Shown: piece after piece, positions 33,501 through 60,835 of the stretch
Numbering within the stretch: the stretch's first letter is position 1
How the letters are laid out: every line of letters starts with the position of its first letter
Virus record (IMG/VR): IMGVR_UViG_3300030107_006644
Span: 1 to 64,000 of that record
DNA: 64,000 nt
Strand: one strand, 5' to 3'
Program-made: the position numbers and the translations under genes
Notes under the pieces: generated by a model
What the model saw: only the letters and a program-made list of their open reading frames with translations
Told to the model about the DNA's origin: nothing
Databases searched by the model: none

Positions 33501-36500
33501 ATGCTTTCGTGTTCGAACGAGACTAGAAACTGGAACAACTGGTGTCTATATTTCCACTATGACGACGAACGCAATACTGGCGATGTTGAATCAAATTATG
33601 ATCAATGGGTGACAATTCCCGGCCGCCGGGGCCTTGGCGGGTCTCAAGGGACGTTCGACAACTTGCTCAACGGAATGCAGCCATTTGCTTTTTCTACATG
33701 GCTTAAACCCCTTGGCTCTAAATACAACTACACAGTTCCCGGCTCCAGCCCGGCGGTTAACGTACCGCACAGCAACAAGAAAAGGGTGATCTTAAACTTA
33801 GGCGACGCTTCTCAAACCGCAATCGCGCGAACCGCAACTCAGGGCGACCGTACTGATTTTGTCGGTGCCACGCTTGCAACTCAGGACGCTGAACGTATAT
33901 TCAACTTTCAAATTCACCTTGAGCCTGCCGATAACAAGGTTGCGATTATTGCTCCGTTTAGTATGGGGTATGGCCACTGGACTGTTACAGGAACCTCTAC
34001 AGATCACAGAATTAAAGATAACGAGTGGACACACTTGGTGGTTGTGTACGTACCAGATTCTTCATTAGCTGATGTTGCGCTCGATCCTACCGAAGCCAAA
34101 CTTGACACTTATACGGGTACGACATCAGGGGTCACTGATAGAACACAACAGCCAGAAGACACACTTCAGATTGGCGACGATCCGATATCGTGGGGAGCAA
34201 GCTCTATCGATAAGAGCAGTGATACACCTACGGCGCATACTAACTTGATGGCCGGAACATCTGGACAAGGATCGGTAGATGCACAAGAAGAACAAGAGAT
34301 ACGTTCAATGGGCTGGAAGGGTGACACTAAGCTGTCGACCTTCTACAAAGGAATGGCGGCTATCGACGTCGCCGTAGACAAGATGCAAAAAGTTGAAAGT
34401 CGAGCACTTGAAGGGGCCACTCCGCTTATCAAAGTATACATGAACGGCGTTTTGGTAGCCAGCTTGGATCTGGCCACCGGCGTCAATACTGGATTTTTCT
34501 TAAACAGGATGCCTTATGGTACATCGATTCCGACAGTGGGATCGGCATTTTTAGGACGAGGCCCGACCGCAATCCGTGACCTTACGCCATGGCCCGAGGA
34601 CCACCCAGATTATGTTCAACTTGGTGTCCAAGGCCAAGCGGCCCCGACAGAATGGAGCTATTACGGCCTTATGGATGAAACATCTTTTTGGGTTAAAGGG
34701 AGAGCAACAGATGCATCTATTGAACCCCTTATGCAGCAAGATGTAACTCAGATTTATCAAAATGCAGACGGCAGTAGGGGCCCCAATAACCTAAATGCTT
34801 TCCGTCCGAAAAGTAGGGGCGCCCTCATATCGTGGTACCGCTTCCACGATCAGGAGCCGCCACACGTTTCTCGTTTCGATAGGATTACCGGTTATGGCCA
34901 ACTCAATCATTTGCCCAACCAAATTAATGATAATAAAGATTGGGGACTCTCTCGCTTTCACGCCTATACCTCCCCAACTTATCCTAATGCCGCCGTTCAC
35001 CGGCCAATTCGTGGAGGGTTTTCCGCTTCTACGGATCTCCCGGGAGAACAATACATCAATGAGTACTGCACACCAGTCACGTCCGCATATTACGACAATT
35101 GGTATGTAACACATGAAATACCCAGATCTACTGCACAGTATACTTGGATTTCACAATCTTGCGAGAGAGATGCATCAGGCTCCGCATTAGACGAGCTAGG
35201 AAACGCCGTTTGGCATCATCCTCCGCCGCATGGTAAGGTGCATGTGCACGACCCAACTTCAGAAGATTACCTAAAGCAATATAATGCCATATCTTTCACC
35301 ATAGAGAGTCATGTTGGATCGGCTTATTCTACCGCGACTGGCAAACGCCACTGGAACGATAGCGCAGGAAATGGCTCGCACACCCGCGAATCCGTGGCCG
35401 CCGTAGCTGCCTTGCGAGATTTTATTCCACAATCGTTCGCTCAACTCAACACAAACCTCTACGAATCGTTGAATGTTTCGACACAAGCGTTAGGTCTAAA
35501 CCAAGATGAATCTGATTTTATAAATGATGATGTCGTCAACTTTGGTGCTAATGATAGTGGCGGTTCGGCCGTTCTAAACGGGTTGGTGTTGAAGCGTCAA
35601 GGTCCGTATGGCTGGCCGTCTTGGAAACAAATTAGAGGTTCGGAACACCCAGTGGTCCGAAGACACCTTAAAAATAGCAGCGTGCTATCGATAGTGCAGC
35701 CACCAGAAGAAAAATATTTATATTCTGGTTCCGCCGTCATTGGTTCGTATTTTGGCCTTCCACGCGGCGATAACTTTGTTCAATATACGGAACCGGCAAT
35801 TGCATACAAAAAGCCAATGGTGCACGTCCTTCAAGACTCTATTGTGCTTATGCATGCTTATTCTAACGCTATCGATAAATTTTCAAATCAAAATATAAAC
35901 AATTTTCTAAATCTTAGAACCGATGAGCCATGCGCATATACAAACTTAGTCGAGGAATATACAGGCGAAGATCCAACTCTTAAGTTTAATTACTTGAGAT
36001 ATCACGAGCCGGTGTATCCAAAGCAAGTCAACCGATATAGAAATATTATTAGAAGTAGACCAAACTACGCAACCAGTTTCTATCAGTCAGGTCGTTCCAA
36101 CCGTAAGCCAATATTATGGGCACCAGAAGATCCCATGGGCCAACTTGACTGGAAGATACGGAATACAGAAACGCCTGTTTTGGTAGACACGATTATTAAT
36201 GTTACCAATTCTCAAGGGTATACAATGATTCACGCTGCTAAATGGGCTACCAATATAGGGGGAGCCGCAGCTACTGTTGGTCATATGGCTGGGTATATCA
36301 CGGGAAGCATCGGAGCCCACAGTATTTGGCCAATGGACGCGAGAGGAGACTTTCACACCATCACCAACGTGCTGGGTGAATCTTCCGTGCCTGATTTAGC
36401 TGTTCGAGAAGCCGGATATCCAATTAGGGAATATGTTGGATGCACCTCTGCCAACACCACCCCGGGGAACTACCCGCTTTGGTCTGGCTCTTGTGATTCT

Positions 36501-39500
36501 GATGCCTTTACTAAGAGCCACTATATAAGCGAACTATGCGGCGAGCTTCAGGCATACTTTGTGCAGGCTAGAGGCGCATCGACCACATATTATAATTGCG
36601 TAGATGGAGCTACACCGCCCGGCACCGATACAAATGGTGAACCGACCTTCGAGCCGCTAATTCCGCATGCACAATATCACCGTAGACACACAACAAGACT
36701 ATCTTCGTCCTTTCACTCGCTTTCGGGGTACAAGCATGGCATTTCCTCCAATCAGTGGAACTCGGGTTCGCACCCAAGAGGAATCTGGACGCGCGACTCA
36801 ATTGCTGACGCATCCGAATGGCAAACTAGATACGGGCTTGTTGCTGGCTCCTATATGAGCGGAGCCCTTCCATGGCACTTTGTTGATCGTATTGATTCAG
36901 GAATACGGGGACAGTGGCTCTACGGAGGCCAAACCATGTGGGAGGCCGATATACAATCCGGCAAACGACCCGCTTACGATAGTTATGAACAGTTTGCATA
37001 TGAGGATATTAGACTAAAAGGTCAGGAATATTCTACAGTACCAGAGTTTAAAATTAGTGATCATATCGCAAAGTATGTTAGTTTAAGAAATTCTGACTTC
37101 CTATCAGACAACGACACACTGTTTTCGCTTTCCGGCTCAAGTATTCGGGATAGCAGCGAAGACGGGTTTTATACCACCTATAGTCATAGTGATTTTATGA
37201 AGCATTTTGAGGTTATAGCTGGAGATCACGCTGATGTCACTGAAGGCCCATCTGAGTTAAAACTTCGTTGCACTGGAATAAAGAAATTTTTACCATATGA
37301 CGGAGTTTACCCAATGCAGAGAAGCTTGCAGTTGGCAACGCTGTTCTCTAGATCTTATGCAGACAATGTTTATCTCGTAGAGGGCTCGGGCTCTTCACAA
37401 ATTGATTTCGGTGCAGGCTACAGATCGAGCATACATGGTGGTGCCGGCACCGCTGCAGACTACTATGATGAGGATGCAATCAAGCAGGGAGCTTGGTCGG
37501 TATACATGAGGCCTTTCTTCGCCCCCGGTATTTTGTATAACACAGTGAAATCAGGAGTAGCAGTAGACTTTCCAGTTATGACTGGTTCGTTTCATATGAC
37601 TTCTTCTACGCCGTTAGCAATTAGTGGAAAACACGATGGAAGTTCCGGCTCGCCCTCTCACAATTGGGATAGTTACGATATTGACGAGAAAGAAATTTTT
37701 ACAGTCACAACGGATATCATAGCTGAGCCAAGATTTCATGATAGAATACCTTTTGAGGCGATTATCGAGCCCGACAAGCACGTTGTCGGTATGCCAATTG
37801 TTAATATGGAAACTCACGTCTCGGGCGCCGGAAACGTCTATGGACAAGTGAATGGTTGTGCGGAAAACATGGGATCGTATAATCGCACGCTGTCCATTAC
37901 TGCCTCGCTGGCCGCCCCCGGTGGCAATCTTTATAAAATGGCATCAAATAACTTTTTTGCAGAAAGTATCGACTTTTTCCTTCAAGATCGGCGTCTTTCA
38001 GCAATATCCTCTTTGCCTGAAAGCGATCCAAACTTTGGTGTAGTGTCTGAGGCTGATGCTGAGAAAAAGTTTATGGCCTTGGTTAAGATTCGCAAAAGCG
38101 TCGAACGCCAACAGAATTTCAACCCTCTTACTGGTGCTCTCGTCTCTACTGCAGATGGCAAGACATACCCTTATATAAATATGCCTTTGATGACGGATAC
38201 TCCAATCCCGCATCCGTGGACATTATCTAAGGAGACCATCACGATGTATAGCCGTCCTAGCGCTTTCGGCCCGCCGTCCATGGGAATGTGGAGTTCTATT
38301 AGTGGGTACAACATGCCTTATACTCCGCCATATTACGACGGTGCAGCTTGGGCAATTTTAACCTTTAGTCCGGGCGAATACTCCGGCGCTAAAAAATATA
38401 CACTGGACGAGATTCTGGCCGCCACCACAATTGAATATACTAGAACTGGAAAAGTTTATGTAGAGCATGGACCTGATGCATCCGGTAAGGCATTTGGAGC
38501 AACCACTGTTAGCAACTGGCCTTGGTCGCTTCCATGTTCGTATCCGCATGCCCGCGCAACCTTCTCTCTAAGTCACATAACTAACCTACTTGATACCAAT
38601 AGCTCTGGACGGTTTAAGGACTTTGTGGAGATGGTTGATCCTTATCCGCAAGGAAGGACTTTTATAGACGATAATGCAATGCAGATTAGCGCCTCTGTTA
38701 ATCTAATGCAAAAATCTCGCCTTAAAGCGGCAGAGTATAATGCGCTTACAGGAAGAAAGGTTCTGGTGACAGATTCGCCAAACGCAGAACTAGCTACATG
38801 GGTTATCCAAACAAAGTACGAGACTCCAATATTAAACTTTGGAGATGCGGACAAGACCGAAACAAAAACTGTAGCAGGCGATGCGACTAATCTTTGGGGT
38901 AATGAACTTTCCGCCAAGGGCATGTGGCATCAGTACGGAGTTTTACCATCAAGCGATGAGGACGGTATCTTCTTAGAAATTCAAGATGTTCCGAAAAAGT
39001 ATCTTAGAAAAGGAATGGGAATTGAGCCGAACGAGGTAAAATCTTTATGTGATTTGGTAGGATTCTCTACCGAGCCTGTAAAGATTGGTCAGCCGGCCGT
39101 AAGTAGGACCATCTCTGAAGCAGTGGTGGCCGTACCGTTCGTTGAAAAGGATGGAGAAAGGCAGTTCTTTAATGTTCCGCGAAGAACTATCGACTTGGCA
39201 GCTGGTTTGGATGATGTGACGGATGAGGATAGAGAATCCAATACGGTACCGGGAGACAGCATAGTCGACATGGTTGATAAGATGAACAAGTTTGTATTTC
39301 CTCCGACTATGAATTTCTTACTATATGACTCCATTGAGCCCTTCGCGATGTATATTTTTGAATTTACGCACGAGCTTTCCCAAATGGATCTTACCGACAT
39401 GTGGCAAAATCTCATGCCAGAAATTGGTCGTACCTTTGAAGAGCAAACTGTAGAGGTATCACATCCGTTGTTCTCTAACGAGGTTATGGGGTGTGAAGCG

Positions 39501-39830
39501 CTACTGAGCGGCCAAAAGGTTCAAAAAGAACTTCAATGGATGGTCTTCAAGGTCAAACAAAAGGCAAAGACAAACTATTACGAAAAGGTAATTGGTTCTG
39601 ATCTTGAAAAATATGACTTCCTGCAGATAAAACCGGGAGTGTTGAGTAAGCGCAACAATTCTTCATCTGGCTATAGTTATAACTGGCCGTATGACTATTT
39701 CTCACTAGTCGAGTTGGTCAAGATAGATTCGGAAGTTACGTTTGGGGCGATTCCGGAACCAGACGCGGTAAAGGAAAGTATAAAGGTGCGGGATTTAGCA
39801 GAATTGGTAAAATTAGAAGAGGATGAATAG
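27552..39830 (+). CDS. Giant (4092 aa) baseplate wedge/gp7-like protein with multiple LamG/concanavalin-A-like domains
   Basis: IFKSKGTEKAFRNLIRCFG (K.KGT wedge motif); LamG hallmarks TVEFWLK, WSHYAV, LYVNG, SGSLDEFRYW and again FSTWLKP, WTHLVVVY, VYMNG, GLMDETSFW; internal duplicated module. Confidence 0.7.
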   Translation: MSVKKLFDKAKKTRPVVKKPNKRLHVDVESEDFMEAKAATQERYDPHVIYGTTPIEMKNFVRYGSAKRYFEDAFSRIYTTYPYDGSLKEKEEWSQTSTPLDRYIFDNVYPRTNGYIRISSAGWGALGANGITVGYGHPSTLEYVTFYGGPTTGSATNLMKHFDLQDRGVGSNIYESYSELSSSTGGEVGLGTRESNLKFDVEDFGVTVEFWLKKTAFTTAKTEKEVIFDLWNGETPATDGYGRLRIEIDGTATGSPFLVSCQSGSSAGFSNEVVGTGLTTTTLQDWSHYAVSLKADTSTNKIRTRLYVNGVLNQEQSLGTAMGEVTGSLIANIGALRGATTSATVGTVAEGYGKLSGSLDEFRYWKAERGIKEVGRHWFKQYAGGTNTDLSNTTLGVYYKFNEGCTGTASVDQTVLDYSGRLTNGHWVGYPGCTARCVDSAMVLAGAAEREFKDPILYSFHSDVATKKETISKNAKAYDDNNSSSIYSTIPNWILEFQENNTANDLEYLTQIMASEFDKLHQQISALSRVRDSSYLSSTQTSIPFTDKMLTERGMPAADIFENADLLAKIMGRSESQEYESDIVDIKNRIYHSIYNNLSNIFKSKGTEKAFRNLIRCFGVDEKLLKLNIYGDNATYKLTDNAKIVAKKRRYANFYSSGSDDATVVQQTASSNANSVSYITGSNNSLYEPYSGMTVEAEVHFPKKKSASDEGYFAVTYHTASLFGMHTVGDDPADFTFLTDDYANLQVYALRDASDNKSARFMLTSSSPFPIPEIITDLYKDVYEDQTWNLSVRLRPSKYPISDMVHGAEAVAATATITTVAEASINDTKDFTLTDAAGTTTTYNFSTGLATTDNNVAYTPGGQDGRGPAGTITIGVLGTTTAADIRDEIITRINAGTSIGFAASASGDNVLVTQNTAGTAGNTSITEPAGATGLTLPSTFTGGLGAAHPFKVEFHGLRLIAGEVIDEFLLTSSATHASGSLFLQSSKRLYMGAHLTNYTGSVIQRSDTRSSGLRYWPIYLGPGEDPSVLSRTKDEFKNRVKDIDNYGTSYVYRNAGFLQDSLKDIEVPFVETLALNWNFSELSSSNAAGEFTVEDESSGSSDLLNRYKWVSNLVERQHTGRGYKFAASSTDVIDIMYVNSYAPQLPETISSSDMVNILTQDDDIFTREHRPVNYYFAIEKSMYQTISEEILNMFASIVDFNNLIGDPVNRYRQEYKDLGKLRQLFFERIGNTPELDKYVEFYKWIDSGINEMLEALIPASVNSSDGARTMVESHVLERNKYWNKFPTIEMVGDPPAVGLRGITEMLYPWKFGHANPGDVDSTVATIENERCFWWRERAERTTPANTSGDSTIDTQREGIRDVVGKHRDESRTLSHNAGTTYAGQTYALNRFSRPYRFDVDEVKEIHGGVNYRKGKDLDFSRTATHHHGEDNPVGFPVNVILYEDSNASVLEKQSKDPWFDMAGNTEGRQATCTDQEDEWPRSKNKVSYHAFILKNQEYSPPPWPPSMPKEDDGNTYFSSLKGDWASPFSLYETTEEVAATGYHKDINDRFRAKTTITNLHEDSYGDNERPVQGPFTDAHVGGRQNRHIILNKGEDTYVDRPEAWKLLMGPDLASCGHPFISPTDAYKLGLVGPDYPHPLPYSPGVKPSTWRPRANYLRDGTAKRPVNIQNIKHDTGSSILGNYDKDYQVVSIPGRQINNRALIKSGGFEPIIEDSFYFAETLSEYRKPERLRSEHVFVTRFSAPGAPEAAGDHRGGFGLDYNSGEFSSYSSMNYRNLILRGGGRWPDGIRELLTNHTRQFGYFSDQMNLSNGAAAAAVAATATITTVVEASINDTKDFTLTDAAGTTTTYNFSTGLATTDNNVAYIPGGSDGRGPSGTITIGLLGTTTAADVRDEIITRINAGTSIGFTASASGDNVLVTQNTVGPAGNTSITEPAGATGLTLPSAFTGGWGMSRASSVNAFDYSGQPNYHKTNRNTGYRLNNMLSCSNETRNWNNWCLYFHYDDERNTGDVESNYDQWVTIPGRRGLGGSQGTFDNLLNGMQPFAFSTWLKPLGSKYNYTVPGSSPAVNVPHSNKKRVILNLGDASQTAIARTATQGDRTDFVGATLATQDAERIFNFQIHLEPADNKVAIIAPFSMGYGHWTVTGTSTDHRIKDNEWTHLVVVYVPDSSLADVALDPTEAKLDTYTGTTSGVTDRTQQPEDTLQIGDDPISWGASSIDKSSDTPTAHTNLMAGTSGQGSVDAQEEQEIRSMGWKGDTKLSTFYKGMAAIDVAVDKMQKVESRALEGATPLIKVYMNGVLVASLDLATGVNTGFFLNRMPYGTSIPTVGSAFLGRGPTAIRDLTPWPEDHPDYVQLGVQGQAAPTEWSYYGLMDETSFWVKGRATDASIEPLMQQDVTQIYQNADGSRGPNNLNAFRPKSRGALISWYRFHDQEPPHVSRFDRITGYGQLNHLPNQINDNKDWGLSRFHAYTSPTYPNAAVHRPIRGGFSASTDLPGEQYINEYCTPVTSAYYDNWYVTHEIPRSTAQYTWISQSCERDASGSALDELGNAVWHHPPPHGKVHVHDPTSEDYLKQYNAISFTIESHVGSAYSTATGKRHWNDSAGNGSHTRESVAAVAALRDFIPQSFAQLNTNLYESLNVSTQALGLNQDESDFINDDVVNFGANDSGGSAVLNGLVLKRQGPYGWPSWKQIRGSEHPVVRRHLKNSSVLSIVQPPEEKYLYSGSAVIGSYFGLPRGDNFVQYTEPAIAYKKPMVHVLQDSIVLMHAYSNAIDKFSNQNINNFLNLRTDEPCAYTNLVEEYTGEDPTLKFNYLRYHEPVYPKQVNRYRNIIRSRPNYATSFYQSGRSNRKPILWAPEDPMGQLDWKIRNTETPVLVDTIINVTNSQGYTMIHAAKWATNIGGAAATVGHMAGYITGSIGAHSIWPMDARGDFHTITNVLGESSVPDLAVREAGYPIREYVGCTSANTTPGNYPLWSGSCDSDAFTKSHYISELCGELQAYFVQARGASTTYYNCVDGATPPGTDTNGEPTFEPLIPHAQYHRRHTTRLSSSFHSLSGYKHGISSNQWNSGSHPRGIWTRDSIADASEWQTRYGLVAGSYMSGALPWHFVDRIDSGIRGQWLYGGQTMWEADIQSGKRPAYDSYEQFAYEDIRLKGQEYSTVPEFKISDHIAKYVSLRNSDFLSDNDTLFSLSGSSIRDSSEDGFYTTYSHSDFMKHFEVIAGDHADVTEGPSELKLRCTGIKKFLPYDGVYPMQRSLQLATLFSRSYADNVYLVEGSGSSQIDFGAGYRSSIHGGAGTAADYYDEDAIKQGAWSVYMRPFFAPGILYNTVKSGVAVDFPVMTGSFHMTSSTPLAISGKHDGSSGSPSHNWDSYDIDEKEIFTVTTDIIAEPRFHDRIPFEAIIEPDKHVVGMPIVNMETHVSGAGNVYGQVNGCAENMGSYNRTLSITASLAAPGGNLYKMASNNFFAESIDFFLQDRRLSAISSLPESDPNFGVVSEADAEKKFMALVKIRKSVERQQNFNPLTGALVSTADGKTYPYINMPLMTDTPIPHPWTLSKETITMYSRPSAFGPPSMGMWSSISGYNMPYTPPYYDGAAWAILTFSPGEYSGAKKYTLDEILAATTIEYTRTGKVYVEHGPDASGKAFGATTVSNWPWSLPCSYPHARATFSLSHITNLLDTNSSGRFKDFVEMVDPYPQGRTFIDDNAMQISASVNLMQKSRLKAAEYNALTGRKVLVTDSPNAELATWVIQTKYETPILNFGDADKTETKTVAGDATNLWGNELSAKGMWHQYGVLPSSDEDGIFLEIQDVPKKYLRKGMGIEPNEVKSLCDLVGFSTEPVKIGQPAVSRTISEAVVAVPFVEKDGERQFFNVPRRTIDLAAGLDDVTDEDRESNTVPGDSIVDMVDKMNKFVFPPTMNFLLYDSIEPFAMYIFEFTHELSQMDLTDMWQNLMPEIGRTFEEQTVEVSHPLFSNEVMGCEALLSGQKVQKELQWMVFKVKQKAKTNYYEKVIGSDLEKYDFLQIKPGVLSKRNNSSSGYSYNWPYDYFSLVELVKIDSEVTFGAIPEPDAVKESIKVRDLAELVKLEEDE
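29979..30379 (+). repeat. Direct repeat copy 1 (~400 bp, 134-aa module AVAATATITT...FTGG)
   Basis: Aligns without gaps to 33000-33400 (offset 3021 nt, in frame); about 10 amino-acid differences, most nucleotide changes synonymous. Confidence 0.95.
33000..33400 (+). repeat. Direct repeat copy 2 of the 134-aa module
   Basis: See copy 1 at 29979-30379. Confidence 0.95.
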
Positions 39831-52162: not shown

Positions 52163-54220
52163 ATGTCAAGGTGGGGCAAACCAACCAAAAACAAAAGAAG
52201 AACTGATCCCCGATATCACTTAGAAGAAACTGTCGAAAAAGATGACAAGCGGGAGATTTTGCAAGAGCAACCCTCCGGCCTGCGAACTATGGGCAATGTA
52301 GACTCTTCTCAGTTTGTCGGTCCAACTCCGGGCGATCTGATTGATTTCGCCCAGCCACTTGCCGGCCCAGCCAATATGCAAACCGGAGAAGGCATGGCGT
52401 CTCAATACTTATACAATCCGATTTATGATATTGTGAGCAGTACGCCATTCGCCGGGCGCCAACACGCCCTCCAACGCCAAGCAGCCGCAGCGGCCGCCTT
52501 AGATCCTACAAACGTGCCCCCTATGCCAAGAAACGTGAGGACACATCCACCTCCAGCCCAAGCCCCTAACCGCTGGTATTCATCCAACAAGCTGCTCAAC
52601 CCCCGCTCAACGGGCCAAGCCATTGGCAGCCGTCTTCTGAGATGGGGAGGTCCAGCTGTTGGATACCTGCCTCAAGGCGTGATGTTGGCCGGCCAGTATC
52701 AAGGGATGGGAGCCGCAGAGGATGAAATGCATCGACTCGGCCTGCAGAGTAGTTTTATACAACACGGCGGCTATCAGCGACAAATTGATGCGAACCGTGA
52801 CGCACTCGCCGGCATGCCAACTGATACCGAAGAACAGAGGCAAGCGAGGGCAAGACAGGCCGGAATCGTCCAACAACAGCAGAATGCGCTCGACGCAAGA
52901 AATGCAGCAATTGAAGATCTGGCGTGGACCGGTGCATCTGTCGGCGCCACCGGCTACGGTATCGGCGTAGGTCAAGGCCCGCTTGCTAGGGGTGGCCAAA
53001 CAATTGCCAATCGAGGCTATTCTACAGCACTCGGCCGCGTATTTTCGGGAGGAGGAAATCCAGCCTTCAGAACCGGCGCCCAGCGCGCTCTGCCATGGCT
53101 CGGCCGCGCTGCTACCCGTGTAGCACTCCCGCTTGCTGCTGCCCAAGGCTTTGTAGATCTTGGACGAGCCGGCTACGAAGCCGGCGCCGCTTATGGAGCA
53201 CCTTGGGGAGACAGCAGCGAAGCCATCGGCTGGACAAATCCGGGGCAAATGGCCCAAGAAACAATTCTCCACAGCACCCTCGGCGGTGAGGATATATTAG
53301 ATAGAGATCCACGAGACGATAATGAAGCCCTTGCTAGAATTCGAGCCGCAGAAACAGAAGCCGGCCTTAGCACCGGCGACCACATTCGAAATTGGCGTCA
53401 ACACCAGTCAGAATATGAGCGCGATCACGGCGCCATGCCTGAGTACGAATTTGTGCCCGATCCGGAGACGCAAAGGCTTGTTCCTACTGCCGATTCCCGC
53501 AGAGCCCGCCACGATGCGCAGAGAAATGTCTATGCCAGACAGCACGGCTTTAATGATTGGGAGCAGGCAGCTGAAAGCGACACGGCGATGGGTAGACAAA
53601 TTAGGAGAACACGCGCAAGAGCTTCTCAGATGCGAGGCGAGGATCATGATTCTGGAGCACTCACGGGTGATATTGGATTTGATCGCGCCGGCGAACTCGG
53701 CTCACTAAACTTAGATGAGGGCAAAAGTAGAAAGGAGCAAAGATTGCTAATGGAAAATCAATATTCTAAAATGCAAAGATTAGCGGGGATCAAAAAGAAA
53801 AAGCCTCGCCTTAATGAGGATTTGCTAGGCCTTGTCTTATTCGCAGCTGCAAACGCTGCAGCTATCTATGCTGCGGTTGGCCGCCACAATTTGGCCATGG
53901 GCGAACTCGGTGCCGGTGAACCCCCATTGGCAAAAAAATGGGAAGAAACAAAGAGAGAAGCAGAGCAGAGTAATGCTCCTCTGCACGATATGCTTAAGGG
54001 AATCGAAGATATGGCAGAAAGTCAATCCGGACAGCTAACTCCACAACAGTATCAGCAGTTAGCTCAAGCTTTCGGAAATGATCCGGTTCTTATCGACATG
54101 CTAGATCAGTTTGATCGCGAGCAACTATATCCCGATGAAGCTAAACAATTGATTGATCAGATGGATCGTTACGTGCGATCTAAAATACAAGAATTACCCG
54201 ATGAGGGAGAAGAGGTTTAA
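52163..54220 (+). CDS. Hypothetical Gly/Ala/Gln-rich protein, candidate internal virion (ejected) protein
   Basis: GGAGG RBS; RRTDPRYHLEE and ILQE near N-terminus; internal KMQRLAGI and RLNE; hydrophobic Gly/Ala stretches. Confidence 0.6.
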   Translation: MSRWGKPTKNKRRTDPRYHLEETVEKDDKREILQEQPSGLRTMGNVDSSQFVGPTPGDLIDFAQPLAGPANMQTGEGMASQYLYNPIYDIVSSTPFAGRQHALQRQAAAAAALDPTNVPPMPRNVRTHPPPAQAPNRWYSSNKLLNPRSTGQAIGSRLLRWGGPAVGYLPQGVMLAGQYQGMGAAEDEMHRLGLQSSFIQHGGYQRQIDANRDALAGMPTDTEEQRQARARQAGIVQQQQNALDARNAAIEDLAWTGASVGATGYGIGVGQGPLARGGQTIANRGYSTALGRVFSGGGNPAFRTGAQRALPWLGRAATRVALPLAAAQGFVDLGRAGYEAGAAYGAPWGDSSEAIGWTNPGQMAQETILHSTLGGEDILDRDPRDDNEALARIRAAETEAGLSTGDHIRNWRQHQSEYERDHGAMPEYEFVPDPETQRLVPTADSRRARHDAQRNVYARQHGFNDWEQAAESDTAMGRQIRRTRARASQMRGEDHDSGALTGDIGFDRAGELGSLNLDEGKSRKEQRLLMENQYSKMQRLAGIKKKKPRLNEDLLGLVLFAAANAAAIYAAVGRHNLAMGELGAGEPPLAKKWEETKREAEQSNAPLHDMLKGIEDMAESQSGQLTPQQYQQLAQAFGNDPVLIDMLDQFDREQLYPDEAKQLIDQMDRYVRSKIQELPDEGEEV

Positions 54221-54221
54221 T

Positions 54222-55265
54222 ATGAGTGATTTTGATTTTATAGACCATTATGCGGAAGAAGAAGAAGCGGTAAATGAAAATATGCTGCCTGAAAACAGCG
54301 TTGTTTCTTCTTTGAATTGCGCAGTAATTGGTGTGGGAGGTGGAGGCGGAAAAATGGCCAAAGCCTTCCTTGAATTAGGGTTTAACAAGACCTTATTGGT
54401 GAATACTACATCCAAGGACATTCCTGAAGGAGTTGACGAACAACATGTTGTGTTGATTCCTGAAGCAGATGGTATTGGAAAGGATGTCGATCTTGGAAAA
54501 GCCGTATTTGAGGCAAATAGTGCCGTTGTCGAAGACGCCCTTAGAACGAAGCTGGGCCGCGTTGACTGGTTGTTTGTATGTGCAGGCGGAGGAGGAGGTA
54601 CAGGAAGCGCTGTGGCGTCCTTAAACGATGTTTTTGACCGCTATTTAAGCTCGGTACAAGCTGAAGGCCGCGTAATCTATGTGGTTTCTTGGCCAACGGC
54701 TCAAGAATGTCTCAACCCGACAATTAGCAAGAACGCATTATCTTTGGTGAATGATGTTTCGGAGCTTCCGCACGTTGTTTTGGATAATGAGAGGCAAGTT
54801 AAACTTCTGAGAGGAAAGGTTGGCATGCTAGGTATGTATCCTTTGGCCAATTCGTCTTTTGCAAAATTGTTAAGTCAAGTATTAAAGCTTTCATCCGAAC
54901 AATCTCCAATCCAATCGTTTGATTCAAAGGATCTGGAAAGGTGTCTCCGAACTGAAAAGAGAATGTTCGTGGGTTCGACCATGATTCAGAATCCAGCAAC
55001 ACCTAACTTGGGCTCGATGATTCTTCAGAATTGCCTGAAGCGTTCCCCGTGCCCTGCGCCACAAGGAAAACCATCGACTGGCTCGCTATTACTAGTTGTA
55101 AATTCGCAGATGGCAGGCGATCCTGAGATCAGCGCGCACCTAGACGCAGCAATTTCTTACGTCGGAGGAAGAACAGATACACTTTTTTCTGGAGTTTATA
55201 TAAATGAAAGTGTCCCCGGGCTAGTTGCGATACTACTTATGAATGGGTTGGAGAGTGGTCAATAA
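54222..55265 (+). CDS. Tubulin/FtsZ-family GTPase (PhuZ/TubZ/CetZ-like)
   Basis: VIGVGGGGGK (T1), VNT..D, GIGKD..G, AGGGGGTGS tubulin signature, LDNE, SFDSKDL (T7-like). Start moved from 54153 to ATG 54222 (GAGG RBS). Confidence 0.9.
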   Translation: MSDFDFIDHYAEEEEAVNENMLPENSVVSSLNCAVIGVGGGGGKMAKAFLELGFNKTLLVNTTSKDIPEGVDEQHVVLIPEADGIGKDVDLGKAVFEANSAVVEDALRTKLGRVDWLFVCAGGGGGTGSAVASLNDVFDRYLSSVQAEGRVIYVVSWPTAQECLNPTISKNALSLVNDVSELPHVVLDNERQVKLLRGKVGMLGMYPLANSSFAKLLSQVLKLSSEQSPIQSFDSKDLERCLRTEKRMFVGSTMIQNPATPNLGSMILQNCLKRSPCPAPQGKPSTGSLLLVVNSQMAGDPEISAHLDAAISYVGGRTDTLFSGVYINESVPGLVAILLMNGLESGQ

Positions 55266-55266
55266 A

Positions 55267-55623
55267 ATGAAAGAGAAAACGCTTGAACAAATAATCAGAG
55301 AAGAGCTTGGTAAATTCACAGAAGCAATCAGGTTTGGCTCTAGAGGAGAAGCTGAGGCTTATGGAGGCGACCAAACTGTCGTCCATGAGCCGGGAGACGA
55401 CGAGGGTGGATCCGCTGATCCGTCCGCTGGTCTAAGTGTTGATCGCAGTCCTGCAGAAGAGGCTGTCGAAGACAAGATCTATGATTTAGTTGATGCAATC
55501 AAGCAAATGGGTAAATCAAACCCAGACATGACAGACACCTATATTTACTTATTTAGAGCCCTGCAGCAAGCGGGAGTTAACGTTAGCAGTGTTGCAGTGT
55601 TAGCAGAAGGGAGAAGAAAATGA
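55267..55623 (+). CDS. Leader-tagged small protein (MKEKTLEQIIREEL)
   Basis: Shared N-terminal motif with downstream genes; start moved from 55243 to 55267. Confidence 0.7.
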   Translation: MKEKTLEQIIREELGKFTEAIRFGSRGEAEAYGGDQTVVHEPGDDEGGSADPSAGLSVDRSPAEEAVEDKIYDLVDAIKQMGKSNPDMTDTYIYLFRALQQAGVNVSSVAVLAEGRRK

Positions 55624-55724
55624 AGAAAGTATTACACAAATTAGCAAACCTATTTAATAGTGACCATTGTTGTTGCTGCTGCGGTTGTTGTAGTTGCGAC
55701 AACTGTTCGGGAGCATGTAAATGA
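55620..55724 (+). CDS. 34-aa Cys-rich micropeptide (metallothionein-like), not in ORF track
   Basis: MKKVLHKLANLFNSDHCCCCCGCCSCDNCSGACK*; ATGA overlaps at both ends fill the gap exactly; purine-rich RBS upstream. Confidence 0.75.
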   Translation: MKKVLHKLANLFNSDHCCCCCGCCSCDNCSGACK

Positions 55725-57235
55725 AATTAACCAGAAAACAACTTGAACAACAGGTTAGAGAGGCTCTTAAAAAGAGAACTCTTAATGAGAACGAACCACC
55801 CGCTGGGGAAGAGTCCGGTGCAGGATCCAGCCTCTTCGGTGATGGCAATACCTTCTTGGGCATGGAGCCCGATGAAGTGGCCACTGACATGGGCACCCCG
55901 GATGCCACCTTTAATGTTCAGGGCCTAGGGCAAGAACAGGGAGAATTCTTCACCGGCGCCACAGAGCCCAATCCCGCCGGCGGAGGATCATCGGGATTCG
56001 TCCGGACCTTCGATGATCGCGACCTAGCCGCGCAAGCACCAGCCGGTAATCTTAATCAACGCGCAAGAGCAGCCAGACGGTCTGGCGAATTGGTCAGTTA
56101 TGACGAACTGCCGATCAGCACTTCCGCGTATCGAACAGATCCGGAAACTGGCGATATTCGCGTTACGCGCGGGAAGTTCAGGGGCGCCCGTGTTGATCCT
56201 GCCACGATGCCGGGTAATGTGGCCCCGACTGTGCGAGTGACACCACAGGCGCAGGCCAGAAGAGATGCGGCTCGCCGCATTGCCCACGGTAGTTATCAGA
56301 CGCAACAAGGTTCTGGCCGCATTAATGAGGATAATGAGGATGACTACATGTCGCAAAAGACCTTTCCGGCGTTCTCGGCCCTCCCGGGAGAACAAAAACT
56401 CCCCGGCGAGAGCATTGTGGATCCACAAACAGGCGCCACATGGAGCACCGGGAATATCGGAGGAATCGAGCAGTGGATCGGCGGTGAAGGAAACACGGAC
56501 GAGGAAAAGGCTCAGTGGGAAAGGGAGAGGACATCAGATGCATCAGACGAGGCACTCTATCCGACCTCGCCCGCAAAAGTAGAAGATTCGAAACCAAGAC
56601 GCACCAGCCTCGCAGACAAGATTATGAACCCAGATCCCTTGGGCCACTTGCAAGAACGAAGAGAGGCCATGCAACGCAGACGAAGCCGCGTATCTCTTCC
56701 TCCTAAAACTCCCGCTATGCAGGCTATATACGAGAGGGCTGCAATGGGAGATCATCGCCTTAGATTCATGTTTGAGCATGCAGTCGCCGGAAACGCAAAG
56801 GCGCAGCAGTTTCTTAACGCTTTGGCTGAAACTCTTACCAAGAGTCAAATTCTAAAGGAGCAAGAAGCAGCACCTGAACCACCTCACGATTCCGGCCCTC
56901 CAAAAACCGACGAAGGTCTCAATATTGACGCGCTGGTTGAAGAATTGGAGTCGGTGGATGAGGGCATTGGCGCGTGGGCAATGAATAAAGCCGGCCTGAT
57001 TAGCGACGAGGATTACGCAAATCTTACCGCCGAATGGGGCAGACAACGCGCCGCCAAGCGAACGTTAGGAACCAGCGGGTCTGATATAAAGCTGGGCACT
57101 GGCAGAAAAAGCCAGATGGATCAAATCGACTGGAACCCGAAGCGAAAAGACGAGCTTAACGAATCCCAAGATCCCCTTAAGAGAATGCGAGATCTTGCAT
57201 TAAAATCATACGGGAGCTACAAGTATGAAGATTGA
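55721..57235 (+). CDS. Leader-tagged low-complexity protein (504 aa)
   Basis: MKLTRKQLEQQVREAL..LNE N-terminus; internal RINE, ILKE, LNE sites; C-terminal RMRDLAL. Confidence 0.7.
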   Translation: MKLTRKQLEQQVREALKKRTLNENEPPAGEESGAGSSLFGDGNTFLGMEPDEVATDMGTPDATFNVQGLGQEQGEFFTGATEPNPAGGGSSGFVRTFDDRDLAAQAPAGNLNQRARAARRSGELVSYDELPISTSAYRTDPETGDIRVTRGKFRGARVDPATMPGNVAPTVRVTPQAQARRDAARRIAHGSYQTQQGSGRINEDNEDDYMSQKTFPAFSALPGEQKLPGESIVDPQTGATWSTGNIGGIEQWIGGEGNTDEEKAQWERERTSDASDEALYPTSPAKVEDSKPRRTSLADKIMNPDPLGHLQERREAMQRRRSRVSLPPKTPAMQAIYERAAMGDHRLRFMFEHAVAGNAKAQQFLNALAETLTKSQILKEQEAAPEPPHDSGPPKTDEGLNIDALVEELESVDEGIGAWAMNKAGLISDEDYANLTAEWGRQRAAKRTLGTSGSDIKLGTGRKSQMDQIDWNPKRKDELNESQDPLKRMRDLALKSYGSYKYED

Positions 57236-57485
57236 TAGGAAGACATTGATGCGGATCCTTAGAGAAGAGCTATCTACCCACTATTCGCAAGATCTTAAAG
57301 AAGAGACGGATGCGAGCGGCATGTCAAAGAAAATGCACGATGCCTTAGAAGATGCTTCTGGTACAGCAAACATGGACACCGACATGGATACATCAGGCCT
57401 TCAATCAGACGGCGTTAGTTTGGATGAAGGACTCACAAGATTAATTCAATTAGCTGGCATAAGGAGCGCAAAAGATGAAGGTTAG
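57225..57485 (+). CDS. Leader-tagged small protein
   Basis: MKIDRKTLMRILREEL..LKEE; C-terminal LDE..RLIQLAGI; GGAG RBS. Confidence 0.7.
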   Translation: MKIDRKTLMRILREELSTHYSQDLKEETDASGMSKKMHDALEDASGTANMDTDMDTSGLQSDGVSLDEGLTRLIQLAGIRSAKDEG

Positions 57486-57879
57486 CAAAAAGCAATTTAA
57501 AGGTTTAGTTGCCGAAGCGTTAAAGACCGTTTTGGAGATTGAAGAGCCGCCATTTAGAACGGGGCTGAGCAAGGCCGACTGGGAAGGCCCGGGCGATCCC
57601 CGTGGTGCCGGCGCAGATCTTGATGTTTTCCCGGAAACTGAAGCTGAGAAGCTGGGAGATCGGATCGCCGCAGCTATGGAAGCTGGAATTAGAAATGTTT
57701 TAATGAGCCACTTGGGCGACCAAGAAGGCTTAACAGTATACGATAAGTATTTAGCCGATGTCGATGATGATATTCTGAGTATTGCTATGCACATGCGCGA
57801 TGCCGCGATGGACATGGTAGGAGAACCAGAAGGAATCACTGGCGACGAAGAAGACGAAGATTTACAGGAGGAATGGTAA
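57475..57879 (+). CDS. Leader-tagged acidic small protein
   Basis: MKVSKKQFKGLVAEAL; AAGGAG RBS. Confidence 0.7.
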   Translation: MKVSKKQFKGLVAEALKTVLEIEEPPFRTGLSKADWEGPGDPRGAGADLDVFPETEAEKLGDRIAAAMEAGIRNVLMSHLGDQEGLTVYDKYLADVDDDILSIAMHMRDAAMDMVGEPEGITGDEEDEDLQEEW

Positions 57880-58247
57880 TGCAAATAACCATCAAAAGAC
57901 TAAAAGAGATCATTAAAGAAGAGGTGGATTATTTCAACCAACTTCTCACAGAGCAGGGTCCGCCCCCCGGCGGCGGTATGCCGCCCGGAGCACCCCCTGT
58001 TGGAGGCCCTCCCCCCGGGATGGGTCCACCCCCCGGAGGCCCGCCTCCCGGCATGGGAGCCGCACCCGGAGGTCCGCCTCCCGGTGGAATGCCCCCCGGA
58101 GGCCCACCCTCCGGACCACCCGGCGGAGATCCCATTCAGGGTGCTATCGCAGCCCTTGAGGGTGGTGACGCCGCTTCAGCCCTTCAGATCCTTAAGTCGT
58201 TAGCTGGCCCACCCGCCGGCGGCGGTATGCCACCCGGCATGGGATAA
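57879..58247 (+). CDS. Leader-tagged Pro/Gly/Met-rich protein
   Basis: MQITIKRLKEIIKEEV..LLTE then GPPPGGGMPPG repeats; AGGAGG RBS, TAATG overlap (track start 57873). Confidence 0.7.
   Translation: MQITIKRLKEIIKEEVDYFNQLLTEQGPPPGGGMPPGAPPVGGPPPGMGPPPGGPPPGMGAAPGGPPPGGMPPGGPPSGPPGGDPIQGAIAALEGGDAASALQILKSLAGPPAGGGMPPGMG
57957..58244 (+). repeat. Low-complexity GC-rich coding repeat (GPPPG/MPPG units)
   Basis: About ten imperfect (G/M)PP(P)G units with varied codons. Confidence 0.8.
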
Positions 58248-58256
58248 ACATAGAGC

Positions 58257-58886
58257 ATGAAGCTCTTATTTGAAAACTGGCGTAAATTCCTAAAAGAAGA
58301 AAAATGGGAAGATTTCGACACCAATAAGGGCGAGTGGACTAATCTTTCTGCTAGCGATATTGAAGCTGCTAAAGATCCGGCAAATGTAGATATTACAGAC
58401 GAATTGCTGGCCCTAATAGACAATGCTTATAAAGATATTGGTGGAAATTTCGACTTCAGAAACCCCGGCGATATCCCCGGAGATGCTGATTTTTGGCTAG
58501 CGGTTGATTTGGACGACGATCCAGAGCCCGATGCAGTCAGGGTGGGCAAAACTAAGCCTGCAGGGCTTAAATTATCTGCTTCTGGTCATGATGGCTCTAG
58601 ACCGGCAATTGAGGCATTCAAGCAAAAGACCTCAGAATTATTAAGTACGCCCGGGCACTATGGTGAGATGTCAAAAGCCGCCGCACATGTGATGATTAAA
58701 TATTTTCAAGTGCCATTTGTCGCAGATCCAGAAATCGTGCAGAAAGTGCTGGGGCCCTCTAAACCTATTAAGTGGCTCGGACCACATCCAGAGGGTAAAT
58801 ATCCCGGATATGATGGTTGGTATACGAGAACCATTTCAGGTCACGAAGATGAAATGAAAATTATGCTGGGTACCCCCAACGCATAA
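58257..58886 (+). CDS. Leader-tagged protein (MKLLFENWRKFLKEE) with globular body
   Basis: Second leader type shared with 60194; body has LIDNAYKDIGG, SGHDG, GWYTR. Confidence 0.75.
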   Translation: MKLLFENWRKFLKEEKWEDFDTNKGEWTNLSASDIEAAKDPANVDITDELLALIDNAYKDIGGNFDFRNPGDIPGDADFWLAVDLDDDPEPDAVRVGKTKPAGLKLSASGHDGSRPAIEAFKQKTSELLSTPGHYGEMSKAAAHVMIKYFQVPFVADPEIVQKVLGPSKPIKWLGPHPEGKYPGYDGWYTRTISGHEDEMKIMLGTPNA

Positions 58887-58891
58887 TTTAC

Positions 58892-58920
58892 TTGCTTTCT
58901 CTATCCAAGTAGGTTATACT
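58892..58920 (+). promoter_or_regulatory. sigma70-type promoter (TTGCTT-N17-TATACT)
   Basis: Intergenic, 17-nt spacer, followed by AGGAG RBS and ATG 58939. Confidence 0.6.
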
Positions 58921-58938
58921 AATGGTATAGGAGTTAAC

Positions 58939-59400
58939 ATGAAAATAATGTTTTTGCACGGCTTAGAATCTAAACCCGGTGGTTCAAAGCCAACATATCT
59001 ATCATATCACGGGCACACAGTTCTAAACCCTTCACTGCCGAAAGACAGTTGGGATGACAGTGTAAAAATTGCCAGAGCCTTATTCGAACAGGAGCTACCA
59101 GATGTGGTTGTGGGCTCCTCAAGGGGAGGAGCAGTGGCAATAGCGGCTCGCTTGTCTGTGCCTAAGCTCGTGTTGGTCGCACCAGCTTGGGCCAAATATT
59201 GTCCGTGGGGAACAATTCCTTCTACGGCGACAATTTTACACTCTAAAAGCGATGATATTGTTCCGTACTCTGATAGCGAGCTTTTAGCCCACACGTTTGG
59301 CGCCGAACTAATTGAGACCGGCGCCGACCATCGCATGAATGATGAGTTCGCATTAGAAAAAATGCTTGAGGTAATAAATAGAGGTCAAAATTTGTCATAA
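58939..59400 (+). CDS. Small alpha/beta hydrolase (YqiA/UPF0227-like esterase)
   Basis: FLHGLES, nucleophile elbow GSSRGG, LVAPA, HS..DDIV, DH catalytic His. Confidence 0.85.
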   Translation: MKIMFLHGLESKPGGSKPTYLSYHGHTVLNPSLPKDSWDDSVKIARALFEQELPDVVVGSSRGGAVAIAARLSVPKLVLVAPAWAKYCPWGTIPSTATILHSKSDDIVPYSDSELLAHTFGAELIETGADHRMNDEFALEKMLEVINRGQNLS

Positions 59401-59414
59401 AGGTTTATTTCTAT

Positions 59415-59422
59415 CTATTTAT
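59415..59422 (+). promoter_or_regulatory. Candidate late-promoter motif CTATTTAT
   Basis: Intergenic, just upstream of the AAGGTGAGG RBS of 59439, where the leader-tagged cassette resumes. Confidence 0.45.
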
Positions 59423-59438
59423 AAGGTGAGGAATAAAA

Positions 59439-60197
59439 ATGCCGTTTGAATCGGAAAAGCAGCGAAGATGGATGCATGCCAATGAGCCAGAAATGGCCAA
59501 AAGGTGGGAAAAGAAGGAAGAAGCTCTCAAGCAAGAGGGGGGTGGACCAACTGCTGCCACTATTCGCATGCCGGCCGAAAAAATTACCGCTACAGGATCC
59601 GGCACTCCAGATTGGGAACAGGCATTTTTAGAGTACGAGTCTGCAGAACAGGATACGCGCCAATTTCCCGACCCCGGGCTTTTGCAACGCCTAGAAGATG
59701 TTGTTGGTGAAGACTGGCGAGAAGATTACGATGAGTGGAAAGAGCATCCTCACCGCGCTGAGCCGCTGAAACCAAGCCAGCCCGGCCCATTAATATCAGA
59801 GGAGGACAGTGGGATGAAAATTAAAGGTTTAGAACTTAAGCAAATGGTAAAAGAGGCCCTTTTGAGTGAAATGGGTTGCGGAGGCGGTCACCATGGCCAC
59901 GGCCATGAACAACCCTCTATGGGAGGAATGAATGATCTCCTTGCACTTGGCGGAGGCCAAAGTCAAACGCCTCTTATTATTATTCAGACATCTGAAGAAG
60001 AGCAGGAAGGACCAGCGGTAACTCACCCAACTCACATTAGGCACAAGCAGCAAGCACCAGAAGTAAGCGGCCTTGAACAACTTATTCCGATGCTCCTTCA
60101 GCTTGAAGGGCAGGTAGTGTCCTTTTCAAGCAGAGAGTTGGAATCGCACGTTAAGCGCAGTTTAAAAAGGATCTTAAGAGAGAGAAAACGCAGATGA
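59439..60197 (+). CDS. Hypothetical composite protein with internal leader motif and His-rich tract
   Basis: MPFESEKQRRWMHANEPE N-terminus; in-frame MKIKGLELKQMVKEALLSE at 59814 with its own AGGAGG; CGGGHHGHGHE. Confidence 0.7.
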   Translation: MPFESEKQRRWMHANEPEMAKRWEKKEEALKQEGGGPTAATIRMPAEKITATGSGTPDWEQAFLEYESAEQDTRQFPDPGLLQRLEDVVGEDWREDYDEWKEHPHRAEPLKPSQPGPLISEEDSGMKIKGLELKQMVKEALLSEMGCGGGHHGHGHEQPSMGGMNDLLALGGGQSQTPLIIIQTSEEEQEGPAVTHPTHIRHKQQAPEVSGLEQLIPMLLQLEGQVVSFSSRELESHVKRSLKRILRERKRR

Positions 60198-60835
60198 AGT
60201 TGTTGCTTGAAAAGTGGAAGCAGTACGCAGAAGCAGTGCGTGATGGGTTTACAATGGGTAGCCAAGCCGGCAGTATACCCGCTTCTACTGGAATGGGCAT
60301 CATGAAGAAGGAAGATGACGAGGATGATAAAATAGAAGAAGGCTGGGAAGATTATGTCACCGATATAGCCATGGCCGCCCCTGATATCGCAGGCTCAGTT
60401 TACGACAGTTATATTGCCAAACCAATCAATACTGCTTCCCGCCATTACACCGGTCAAAATGTCGCGCCCGTATATGCCGGCGGTGCTAGGGAACCGATAG
60501 AGGCTGCCTACGAAGGCGGACTTGACTTGGCCACTCAAGCGGCCACAGCCCCCCTGCGCGCGGCCAGTACAGTGACGGACTGGGCGAGCAATCTTGTGAA
60601 CGAACATAACGATGAAATGTACGATCTAACAAAAGGTGAACGACCTCCTCCTCATTCTACAGGCGATGTTACCAGAAAGGATCCCGATGCGGACACAGAA
60701 GCAAGCATGACTCCCAACTATGAAGTTGAGGTCGAGCAGCTTGTTTTCGATATGTTGATGTCCGGAATGTCCGAGCAAGAAATCATGAGTATGATTGAAG
60801 AATATGTGCAAGACGCCGCATCATATGCAAAATAA
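60194..60835 (+). CDS. Leader-tagged acidic protein (MKLLLEKWKQY)
   Basis: Leader resembles 58257; internal IEE and VNE sites; ATGA overlap. Confidence 0.7.
   Translation: MKLLLEKWKQYAEAVRDGFTMGSQAGSIPASTGMGIMKKEDDEDDKIEEGWEDYVTDIAMAAPDIAGSVYDSYIAKPINTASRHYTGQNVAPVYAGGAREPIEAAYEGGLDLATQAATAPLRAASTVTDWASNLVNEHNDEMYDLTKGERPPPHSTGDVTRKDPDADTEASMTPNYEVEVEQLVFDMLMSGMSEQEIMSMIEEYVQDAASYAK

Follow-up and report, generated by a model that had tools for sequence, protein, structure and literature searches.

Tubulins of bacterial viruses are known from two settings: PhuZ accompanies the chimallin nucleus of nucleus-forming phages, and TubZ accompanies TubR and tubC in plasmid-like prophages. The C-terminal tail of PhuZ contacts the neighbouring filament subunit, and that of TubZ binds TubR. 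The subject of this work is a tubulin/FtsZ-superfamily GTPase gene on the plus strand of a 64,000-nucleotide stretch of viral DNA (IMG/VR record IMGVR_UViG_3300030107_006644). This stretch, termed the window below, comprises the initial 64 kb of one 205,517-bp record, for which CheckV gives 100% completeness. In reviews and comparisons of jumbo phages, tubulins are tied either to the nucleus of the phage or to segregation in pseudolysogeny (PMC7824862; PMC13282480), a phylogeny of the FtsZ/tubulin family was built without viral sequences (PMC9871819), and literature searches brought up no report of a tubulin from a marine T4-like phage. The gene represents, with high confidence, a genuine new family of phage tubulins. 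This family is phage-specific and falls within the TubZ/PhuZ group of mobile-element tubulins. The fuller proposal, that its members are self-polymerising, stand-alone and portable tubulins that organise the infected cell and use an N-terminal peptide in place of a C-terminal tail, is tentative and falls a little short of being probable as a whole.

Assignment to the tubulin superfamily

The product of 347 amino acids (aa) contains the nucleotide-binding loop T1, the tubulin signature T4 (G-box) and the synergy loop T7 (Table 1). The glycine motifs T1 and T4 are conserved across both the family alignment (A1) and a broad alignment (A2), and the aspartates D234 and D237 of T7, aligned to S. aureus FtsZ and CetZ, are invariant in both, as assessed over 20 to 55 sequences. 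A further motif, QNCxxxSPCPxP with two invariant cysteines, is specific to the marine tubulin family. The Pfam model Tubulin (PF00091) matches the product with an E-value of 1.5e-7 and 32.3 bits in hmmscan, against a cut-off of 33, and with 33.5 bits in the genome search, which identified no second tubulin gene in the 205.5 kb. All 20 family members searched match PF00091, with E-values down to 5.9e-9. A single-sequence search of solved structures retrieved FtsZ as the best match, together with CetZ and phage TubZ. The best Protein Data Bank (PDB) matches of the family profile are CetZ (3zid, 7.5e-11), c-st TubZ (5e-8) and FtsZ (about 1e-6), and no PhuZ chain was matched in this profile search. 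For a broader family profile, the top PDB match is B. cereus TubZ/RepX at 4e-41.

An AlphaFold2 model built from a 55-sequence alignment has a mean predicted local distance difference test score (pLDDT) of 95 and a predicted template-modelling (TM) score of 0.91. Residues 21-345 are modelled as the complete two-domain fold, consisting of a Rossmann-like GTPase domain, helix H7 and a C-terminal domain, and residues 1-20 are disordered (pLDDT 54-67). The fold is TubZ-like, and plasmid and prophage TubZ are the closest solved structures. The TM score is 0.73-0.78 for B. thuringiensis TubZ, 0.76 for B. cereus TubZ/RepX (root-mean-square deviation 2.3 Å over 312 residues), 0.73 for CetZ2 and about 0.70 for FtsZ. 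A second structure-comparison figure is 32.4, 32.9, 32.8 and 28-29 for these four, respectively, and 29.7 for Clostridium phage c-st TubZ, for which no TM score is listed. Predicted PhuZ models reach TM scores of 0.51-0.57, and no PhuZ is among the top 50 by the second figure.

Family and phylogeny

The family comprises more than 1000 clusters (at 90% identity) matching the product at 59-80% identity, which is far beyond chance. Almost all are marine and viral, and some are labelled 'cell division GTPase FtsZ' by the Joint Genome Institute (JGI). No match to the family was found among GenBank phages by tblastn. Among 185,579 species genomes it is carried by four short contigs (2.7-8.2 kb) of metagenome-assembled genomes (MAGs), three from Flavobacteriales bins and one from a Hyphomonadaceae bin, which are probably mis-binned phage fragments. 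The nearest ESM Atlas clusters are 87-100% viral. In an exhaustive search an identity gap follows after about 44%, and beyond it lie wide relatives at 23-35%. These distant relatives carry the Pfam domain TubZ-like_C and are viral in the ESM Atlas, and one is found in a phage with a T4-type portal and protease. Among these relatives, P0226 (821 aa) contains an intein and a LAGLIDADG/homing endonuclease within its tubulin. Inteins were also seen in the T4-type portal gene of one tubulin locus (L008:14873-18268), which is interrupted by two of them.

Phylogenetic analysis was performed by maximum likelihood with a quick tree search on 61 sequences, including four PhuZ and no CetZ sequences. In this tree the family is monophyletic with support 100; its stem is long, at 1.94 changes per column, and it lies within an uncultivated viral radiation. 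PhuZ forms a separate clade (support 99) joined to c-st TubZ, and bacterial FtsZ lies beyond a branch of support 100 and length 2.36, together with a Haloarcula plasmid 'FtsZ'. The approximately unbiased (AU) test rejects a clade of the family with FtsZ (ΔlnL 52.9, p 0.0116) and does not reject a sister relation with PhuZ (p 0.575), long branches being present in both groups.

A first-pass annotation of the window, made by reading its letters, had described the product as a tubulin with complete GTPase motifs, an acidic N-terminal arm and essentially no C-terminal tail, and had suggested a lineage distinct from canonical PhuZ. The three loops are all in place and conserved family-wide, the arm AEEEEAVNE occupies residues 11-19, and the protein ends four residues past its last strand (..NGLESGQ). 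The suggested distinctness agrees with the separate clades, the lack of a PhuZ chain among the profile matches and the low structural similarity to PhuZ. It stands insofar as the family is not nested in PhuZ, and does not extend to excluding PhuZ as a sister group. The family is neither a member of PhuZ in a chimallin-encoding genome nor a recent capture of a host ftsZ. Capture is contradicted by the AU test and by TIGR00065, the equivalog model of FtsZ, which scores 32.8 bits where its cut-off is 295.

The N-terminal peptide

The predicted disordered N-terminus contains, at residues 3-10, the peptide DFDFIDHY, in which F4 and F6 are invariant and D3, D5 and Y10 are at least 90% conserved. The motif DFDF(I/V)xHY is present in 110 of the 121 members scanned; some of the others may be truncated or have a variant glycine loop or a diverged motif (for example, DEFDFA in P0117). 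Some members have an additional upstream copy of the peptide. It is followed by an acidic linker that varies in sequence and is fixed in length: 108 of 109 members have a distance of 19 residues from the peptide to LxEN, and 109 of 110 have one of 34 residues to the glycine loop. No family member has a C-terminal tail, and most end 1-4 residues past the last strand. The distant viral relatives have acidic-hydrophobic N-terminal peptides (LDIPDL, FDIPDV), often plus basic C-terminal tails.

A tether of fixed length fits a contact of defined geometry, for example with the neighbouring subunit of a filament. The peptide is kept across phages that have almost no other genes in common, so its partner would be the tubulin itself or a host protein. 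The N-terminal peptide probably replaces the C-terminal tail of FtsZ, TubZ and PhuZ. The idea of a clamp-binding peptide, modelled on the C-terminal peptides of the RB69 and T4 polymerases, found no support: no PolB was detected by Pfam, and outside the tubulin the genome has a counterpart of the motif only at the C-terminus of g045. This protein (genome positions 64559-65086) ends in ..LKEEFGFEYVE; no further terminal peptide of the genome is similar to DF(D/G)F.

Carrier genome, insertion sites and mobility

The carrier genome is T4-like. It encodes a Gp23-type major capsid protein and a gp21-type prohead protease; a T4-type portal (gp20) and the large terminase (TerL) were assigned by homology. 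The product of g014 (window positions 12214-12984) is a gp55-type late sigma factor (phrog_234, 4e-7), in keeping with the initial description of the virus as a sigma-factor-using myovirus. Among cultured phages, the capsid protein is closest to those of Flavobacterium phage immuto (45% identity), Microcystis phage Mel-JY01 and Rhodothermus phage RM378, which places the phage on a deep 'far-T4' branch. Chimallin, which the first-pass annotation had not seen next to the gene, was matched nowhere in the genome with either a phiKZ gp54 query or Pfam PF25677. Nor was a multisubunit RNA polymerase detected with RNA_pol_Rpb2_6, a Pfam model that divergent phage subunits could escape. The genome also has no Pfam DNA_pol_B match at E <= 0.01, and the polymerase that replicates it could be highly diverged or belong to a different type.

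Across 87 loci the tubulin gene occupies at least six genomic sites (Table 1), always in the same orientation as the surrounding operons, and no neighbour is constant. Its conservation exceeds that of TerL in 29 of 30 loci, that of the portal in 32 of 35, that of the protease in 22 of 23 and that of the capsid in 18 of 23. When long records were picked by TerL similarity alone (65-80%), one of 13 carried the gene. It is absent from all five TerL-related records that are at least 90% complete, and a Pfam search of these found no tubulin of any kind; the positive control was picked up. The closest complete relative, G005, has a TerL 80% identical to that of the window genome, is collinear with it and has 153 of 210 open reading frames (ORFs) in common, and the tubulin-bearing accessory island is replaced there by other sequence. 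In a tree of TerL, portal and capsid, carriers and non-carriers are interleaved, and the well-supported branches force at least three changes.

The tubulin gene is also found in G022, a complete 161-kb phage with terminal repeats. Its tubulin is 61% identical and keeps the N-terminal motif, while only 17 of its ORFs are in common with the window genome. No TerL, portal or capsid homolog was found in G022 by BLAST, and no Gp23 match, which indicates horizontal movement of the gene between unrelated phages. The tubulin gene is accessory and horizontally mobile. A g191-like ORF lies directly after it, in convergent orientation, in G022 and in the loci L080 and L081; g191 itself (genome positions 195075-195671) is a lipoprotein-like ORF with the N-terminus MSFFKNRSTIIFITSFLVAICYIFIAC that is common to the window genome and G022 (32915-33607).

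Searches for partner genes gave negative results. In a BLAST-based profile of ten genomes, no cluster but the tubulin occurs in every one of the five carriers and in none of the five non-carriers. A c-st TubR query reached a best E-value of 0.1 in the genome, TubR being so divergent that sequence search is weak, and no TubR-like gene adjoins the tubulin in the 87 loci. The protein behind that match, g187, is a recurrent neighbour that was considered as a TubR candidate and rejected, being a small coiled-coil protein also found in non-carriers. No tubC iterons occur beside the operon, where the only repeats are the coding Pro/Gly repeats of g037 and no intergenic array is found. The initial reading of the window, which had seen neither a TubR-like gene nor an iteron array next to the tubulin, is upheld by these searches.

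Operon structure and neighbouring genes

The tubulin ORF, one of the simple ORF calls used here, is open from 54153. The ATG at 54222 is supported as its start: a single nucleotide separates it from the g031 stop codon, a GAGG-rich ribosome-binding site precedes it, and most homologs begin with MSDFDF. The public gene call P0001 begins seven codons upstream and is 354 aa long. Both spacings, between g031 and the tubulin and between the tubulin and g033, are 1 nt, so that the three genes form a tight operon. Family searches with g031 gave no match. Sigma-70-like promoters and terminators around the tubulin gene occur at chance level only, and a T4 late promoter (TATAAATA-type) turns up at varying positions in six of 62 distinct upstream regions and is uninformative. 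A RuvC-like resolvase and a primase are encoded directly upstream of the tubulin island.

Table 1. Features of the tubulin gene, its surroundings in the window, and the sites of the gene in related loci (TUB, tubulin gene)
Feature	Window positions	Strand	Remarks
Tubulin/FtsZ-superfamily GTPase gene	54222..55265	+	347 aa + stop codon
N-terminal peptide D3-Y10, DFDFIDHY	54228..54251	+	predicted disordered, pLDDT 54-67
Acidic linker A11-N20	54252..54281	+	sequence variable, length fixed
LPEN, L22-N25	54285..54296	+	L22, N25 invariant; pLDDT about 97, folded core
T1 nucleotide-binding loop GVGGGGGK	54330..54353	+	residues 37-44
T4 tubulin signature (G-box) AGGGGGTGS	54582..54608	+	residues 121-129
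T7 synergy loop FDSKDLE	54918..54938	+	D234, D237 align with FtsZ/CetZ catalytic aspartates
Family-specific motif QNCLKRSPCPAP	55026..55061	+	C271, C277 invariant
g031, low-complexity ORF	52163..54220	+	685 aa; same operon as tubulin; TAA 54218-54220, 1 nt before tubulin start
GAGG-rich ribosome-binding site	54203..54215	+	within g031 3' end; direct sequence reading
g033, leader-bearing ORF (MKEKTLEQIIREEL...)	55267..55623	+	start 1 nt past tubulin stop
Variable accessory island g031-g041 with tubulin	52163..60835	+	G005: ~3 kb of other sequence between primase and Rad50-like gene
Site a			portal block - TUB - prohead protease
Site b			capsid - TUB - head-tail adaptor block
Site c			protease - TUB - g062 and capsid
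Site d			late sigma factor g014 - TUB - g015; TUB directly downstream of g014, one lineage of relatives
Site e			Rad50-like g043 - TUB
Site f			other sites

Several neighbours of the tubulin begin with a shared amphipathic leader, MKxxxxxLxxIIxEE (for example, MKLLFENWRKFLKEE and MKLTRKQLEQQVREAL, and MKLTKSQLKQIIKEE in relatives). It starts g033, g034, g035, the ORF at 57475-57879, g037 and g038, which lie at window positions 55267-58886, and also g056 (genome positions 73251-73703) as well as g088, g091 and g095 at 115-122 kb of the genome. The gene g056 follows the prohead protease, the position at which T4 has its scaffold protein, and in scaffold-like relatives the leader is repeated at the C-termini. 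The leader, which the tubulin itself lacks, probably serves in prohead targeting or protease recognition. Leader-bearing ORFs, detected with a loose regular expression, make up about 5-10% of the ORFs in these phages and about 10.6% in the tubulin loci. Leader-bearing proteins flank the tubulin in other lineages too, and they are not enriched there (8.5% at the flanks versus the 10.6% background, Fisher p 0.54). A neighbour cluster of about 326 aa, considered as a partner, was rejected: it consists of leader-bearing scaffold-like proteins whose adjacency is not above background.

The first-pass annotation had placed the gene among putative head-cargo genes and had it acting late in infection. 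The former is borne out in the window, where the neighbours do look head-targeted, and fails as a general rule, the arrangement being neither conserved nor enriched across relatives. Late action cannot be deduced, as the contexts of the gene vary across relatives, from head modules and the vicinity of the late sigma factor to replication and recombination regions.

Some other genes of the region and of related loci deserve mention. Behind its leader, g037 (window positions 57873-58247) encodes a Pro/Gly-rich repeat protein (GPPPGGGMPPG...) with 15-33-nt tandem repeats, and g039 (58939-59400), also in the accessory island, a small alpha/beta-hydrolase-like protein (Abhydrolase_6, 6e-6). In a lineage with tubulins of 59% identity (L009:11214-12203, L010:1744-2733), the gene after the tubulin encodes a P-loop protein with a leader (GGPGSGKS; faint Zeta_toxin/AAA_33 matches), and the pair lies on the strand opposite to its neighbours. 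Ribosomal protein S21 is encoded within the head module near the tubulin region in two loci (L001:13145-13351, L002:14876-15151), and the L001 copy has no homolog among the ORFs of the window genome by BLAST. Two giant plus-strand ORFs, of 2792 aa (window positions 15087-23465) and 4092 aa (27552-39830), lie among apparent tail and baseplate genes, and their homologs in G005 are just 35-41% identical over part of the length.

Proposed role and alternative explanations

The tubulin would form GTP-dependent filaments in the infected cell, and these would organise the cell for making virus; they might, for instance, position the assembly sites or the DNA during replication or packaging. By analogy with PhuZ in nucleus-forming phages, such a role would be dispensable and yield-improving. 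The protein would act as a stand-alone module, independent of a chimallin shell, of a TubR/tubC adaptor and of any phage gene dedicated to it as a partner, and needing no partner it could spread among marine phages that are unrelated and settle at many sites. The peptide DFDF(I/V)xHY on its fixed linker would contact the neighbouring subunit or dock on a generic target, such as a host protein. The cellular role itself, that of filaments organising the infected cell, is conceivable and remains on the doubtful side.

Several points weigh against this proposal. What points to GTP-dependent polymerisation is the conserved motifs alone, and the tubulin locus has been found only in DNA metagenomes. 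Small, fast-evolving adaptor genes could escape BLAST-based profiling, and the gene contexts give no consistent timing. The AlphaFold2 model is that of a monomer, which cannot reveal the binding target of the N-terminal peptide. The MAG bins and the capsid relatives hint only weakly at a Flavobacteriales host. Without a cargo, adaptor or anchor, 'organising the cell' stays generic.

A host-directed effector, whose filament or N-terminal peptide engages the host division machinery, is unlikely. The peptide could mimic the C-terminal peptide of FtsZ, compete for membrane anchors or regulators, and thereby stop septation or seize the division site. The presence of the gene in unrelated phage backgrounds without a phage partner favours a host target or the protein itself, and the peptides LDIPDL and FDIPDV of the distant viral relatives resemble the FtsZ C-terminal consensus, DIPxFL. 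The C-terminus of E. coli FtsZ is ..DYLDIPAFLRKQAD, and the FtsZ of Flavobacteriales MAGs ends in ..DDNPFLHDNVD, loosely like DFDFIDHY. However, these likenesses extend over two or three residues of a short motif and have no statistical support, the host is only weakly hinted at, and at about 18% identity co-assembly with host FtsZ is unlikely. Known phage division inhibitors are small peptides, unlike a conserved GTPase with an intact T7 loop. A related version, less probable still, is a 'plug-in' cytoskeleton spread among unrelated marine phages, whose DFDF peptide would dock on a conserved host protein, for example the divisome anchor of the FtsZ peptide, and whose filaments would seize the division or positioning machinery. 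Such a tubulin would be an effector of host takeover, in contrast to one that positions a nucleus or segregates plasmids.

A head-internal tubulin is improbable. Such a protein would be built into the prohead core, where it might form an inner scaffold or 'inner body', and would then enter the cell with the injected DNA or be eliminated by the prohead protease. Many relatives do have the gene within the head module, between portal and protease, protease and capsid, or capsid and adaptor, and in the window it forms a tight operon with ORFs that have the leader of g056, the gene in scaffold position. The tubulin itself, however, has no such leader, and leader genes are not enriched beside it (p 0.54). 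The conserved L-P-E-N could fit the T4 prohead protease site, (L/I)xE, but it is modelled inside the folded core (pLDDT about 97), which weakens its candidacy as an exposed cleavage site. Close relatives with the same head genes have no tubulin, whereas G022 has the tubulin and its N-terminal motif but neither a Gp23-type head nor head genes in common, which makes packaging less likely. An intact catalytic T7 loop would also have no obvious use inside a capsid.

Little probability is likewise left to TubZ-type (type III) segregation, in which the phage genome would be kept as an episome in pseudolysogeny or a carrier state, with the adaptor and centromere encoded elsewhere. Plasmid and prophage TubZ are the closest solved structures, TubZ/RepX is the top match of the broader profile (4e-41), and distant relatives carry TubZ-like_C. 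On the other hand, the family lacks the C-terminal tail through which TubZ binds TubR, and neither a TubR-like gene (beside the tubulin in 87 loci, or detectable in the genome), iterons nearby nor a co-occurring gene in the profiling was found. The T4-like character of the carrier suggests a lytic lifestyle, with no search made for integrases or repressors.

A recently captured or decaying host ftsZ without a function of its own is counted as refuted: the JGI label and the best single-sequence PDB matches point to FtsZ, but TIGR00065 scores 32.8 bits against 295, none of 20 members has FtsZ_C, the AU test rejects the grouping (p 0.0116), the family is essentially absent from cellular genomes, and 59-80% identity over more than 1000 clusters indicates selection.

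If the family polymerises, the proposed stand-alone tubulin would extend cytoskeleton-assisted infection beyond the jumbo phages that form a nucleus. Its exchange between T4-like and non-T4-like phages suggests that phage cytoskeletons are more widespread and varied than PhuZ and TubZ. The conserved peptide offers an experimental handle on what the cytoskeleton of a bacterial virus attaches to, and the family adds many sequences to a poorly sampled part of the tubulin tree.

Comparison with known systems

From FtsZ the family differs in lacking FtsZ_C (0 of 20 members) and the linker with C-terminal peptide, in its equivalog score (TIGR00065, 32.8 versus 295.2 bits), in an identity of about 18%, and in being essentially absent from cellular genomes. 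CetZ, an archaeal cellular protein, is highly similar in fold, but its identity to the family is 17-22%, and the viral-only family has no CetZ_C match.

TubZ of pBtoxis, B. cereus/anthracis (RepX) and c-st resembles the family in its GTPase motifs, including T7, and in being encoded by mobile elements, and the viral radiation around the family has the TubZ-like_C domain. Identity is nevertheless only 16-20%, and none of the 20 family members matches the Pfam domains TubZ_C or TubZ-like_C. In place of a C-terminal tail, an adjacent TubR and tubC iterons, the family has its conserved N-terminal peptide, and its carrier here is a T4-like phage.

The family differs from PhuZ in matching PHROG 4733 only at an E-value of 1.8e-3 and in having no match to TubZ_C_2 (PF22334), which phiKZ PhuZ matches at 1.7e-37, and hhalign gave no alignment between the family and the single phiKZ PhuZ sequence. 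The carrier genome has no detected chimallin or phage RNA polymerase. Like PhuZ, the tubulin is phage-encoded and accessory and not core, and both have a terminal acidic peptide plausibly used for filament contacts, which is N-terminal in the family and C-terminal in PhuZ. Next to PhuZ with its chimallin nucleus and TubZ with TubR and tubC, the family would represent a third arrangement: a stand-alone, tail-less tubulin with a putative N-terminal docking peptide, abundant in the ocean.

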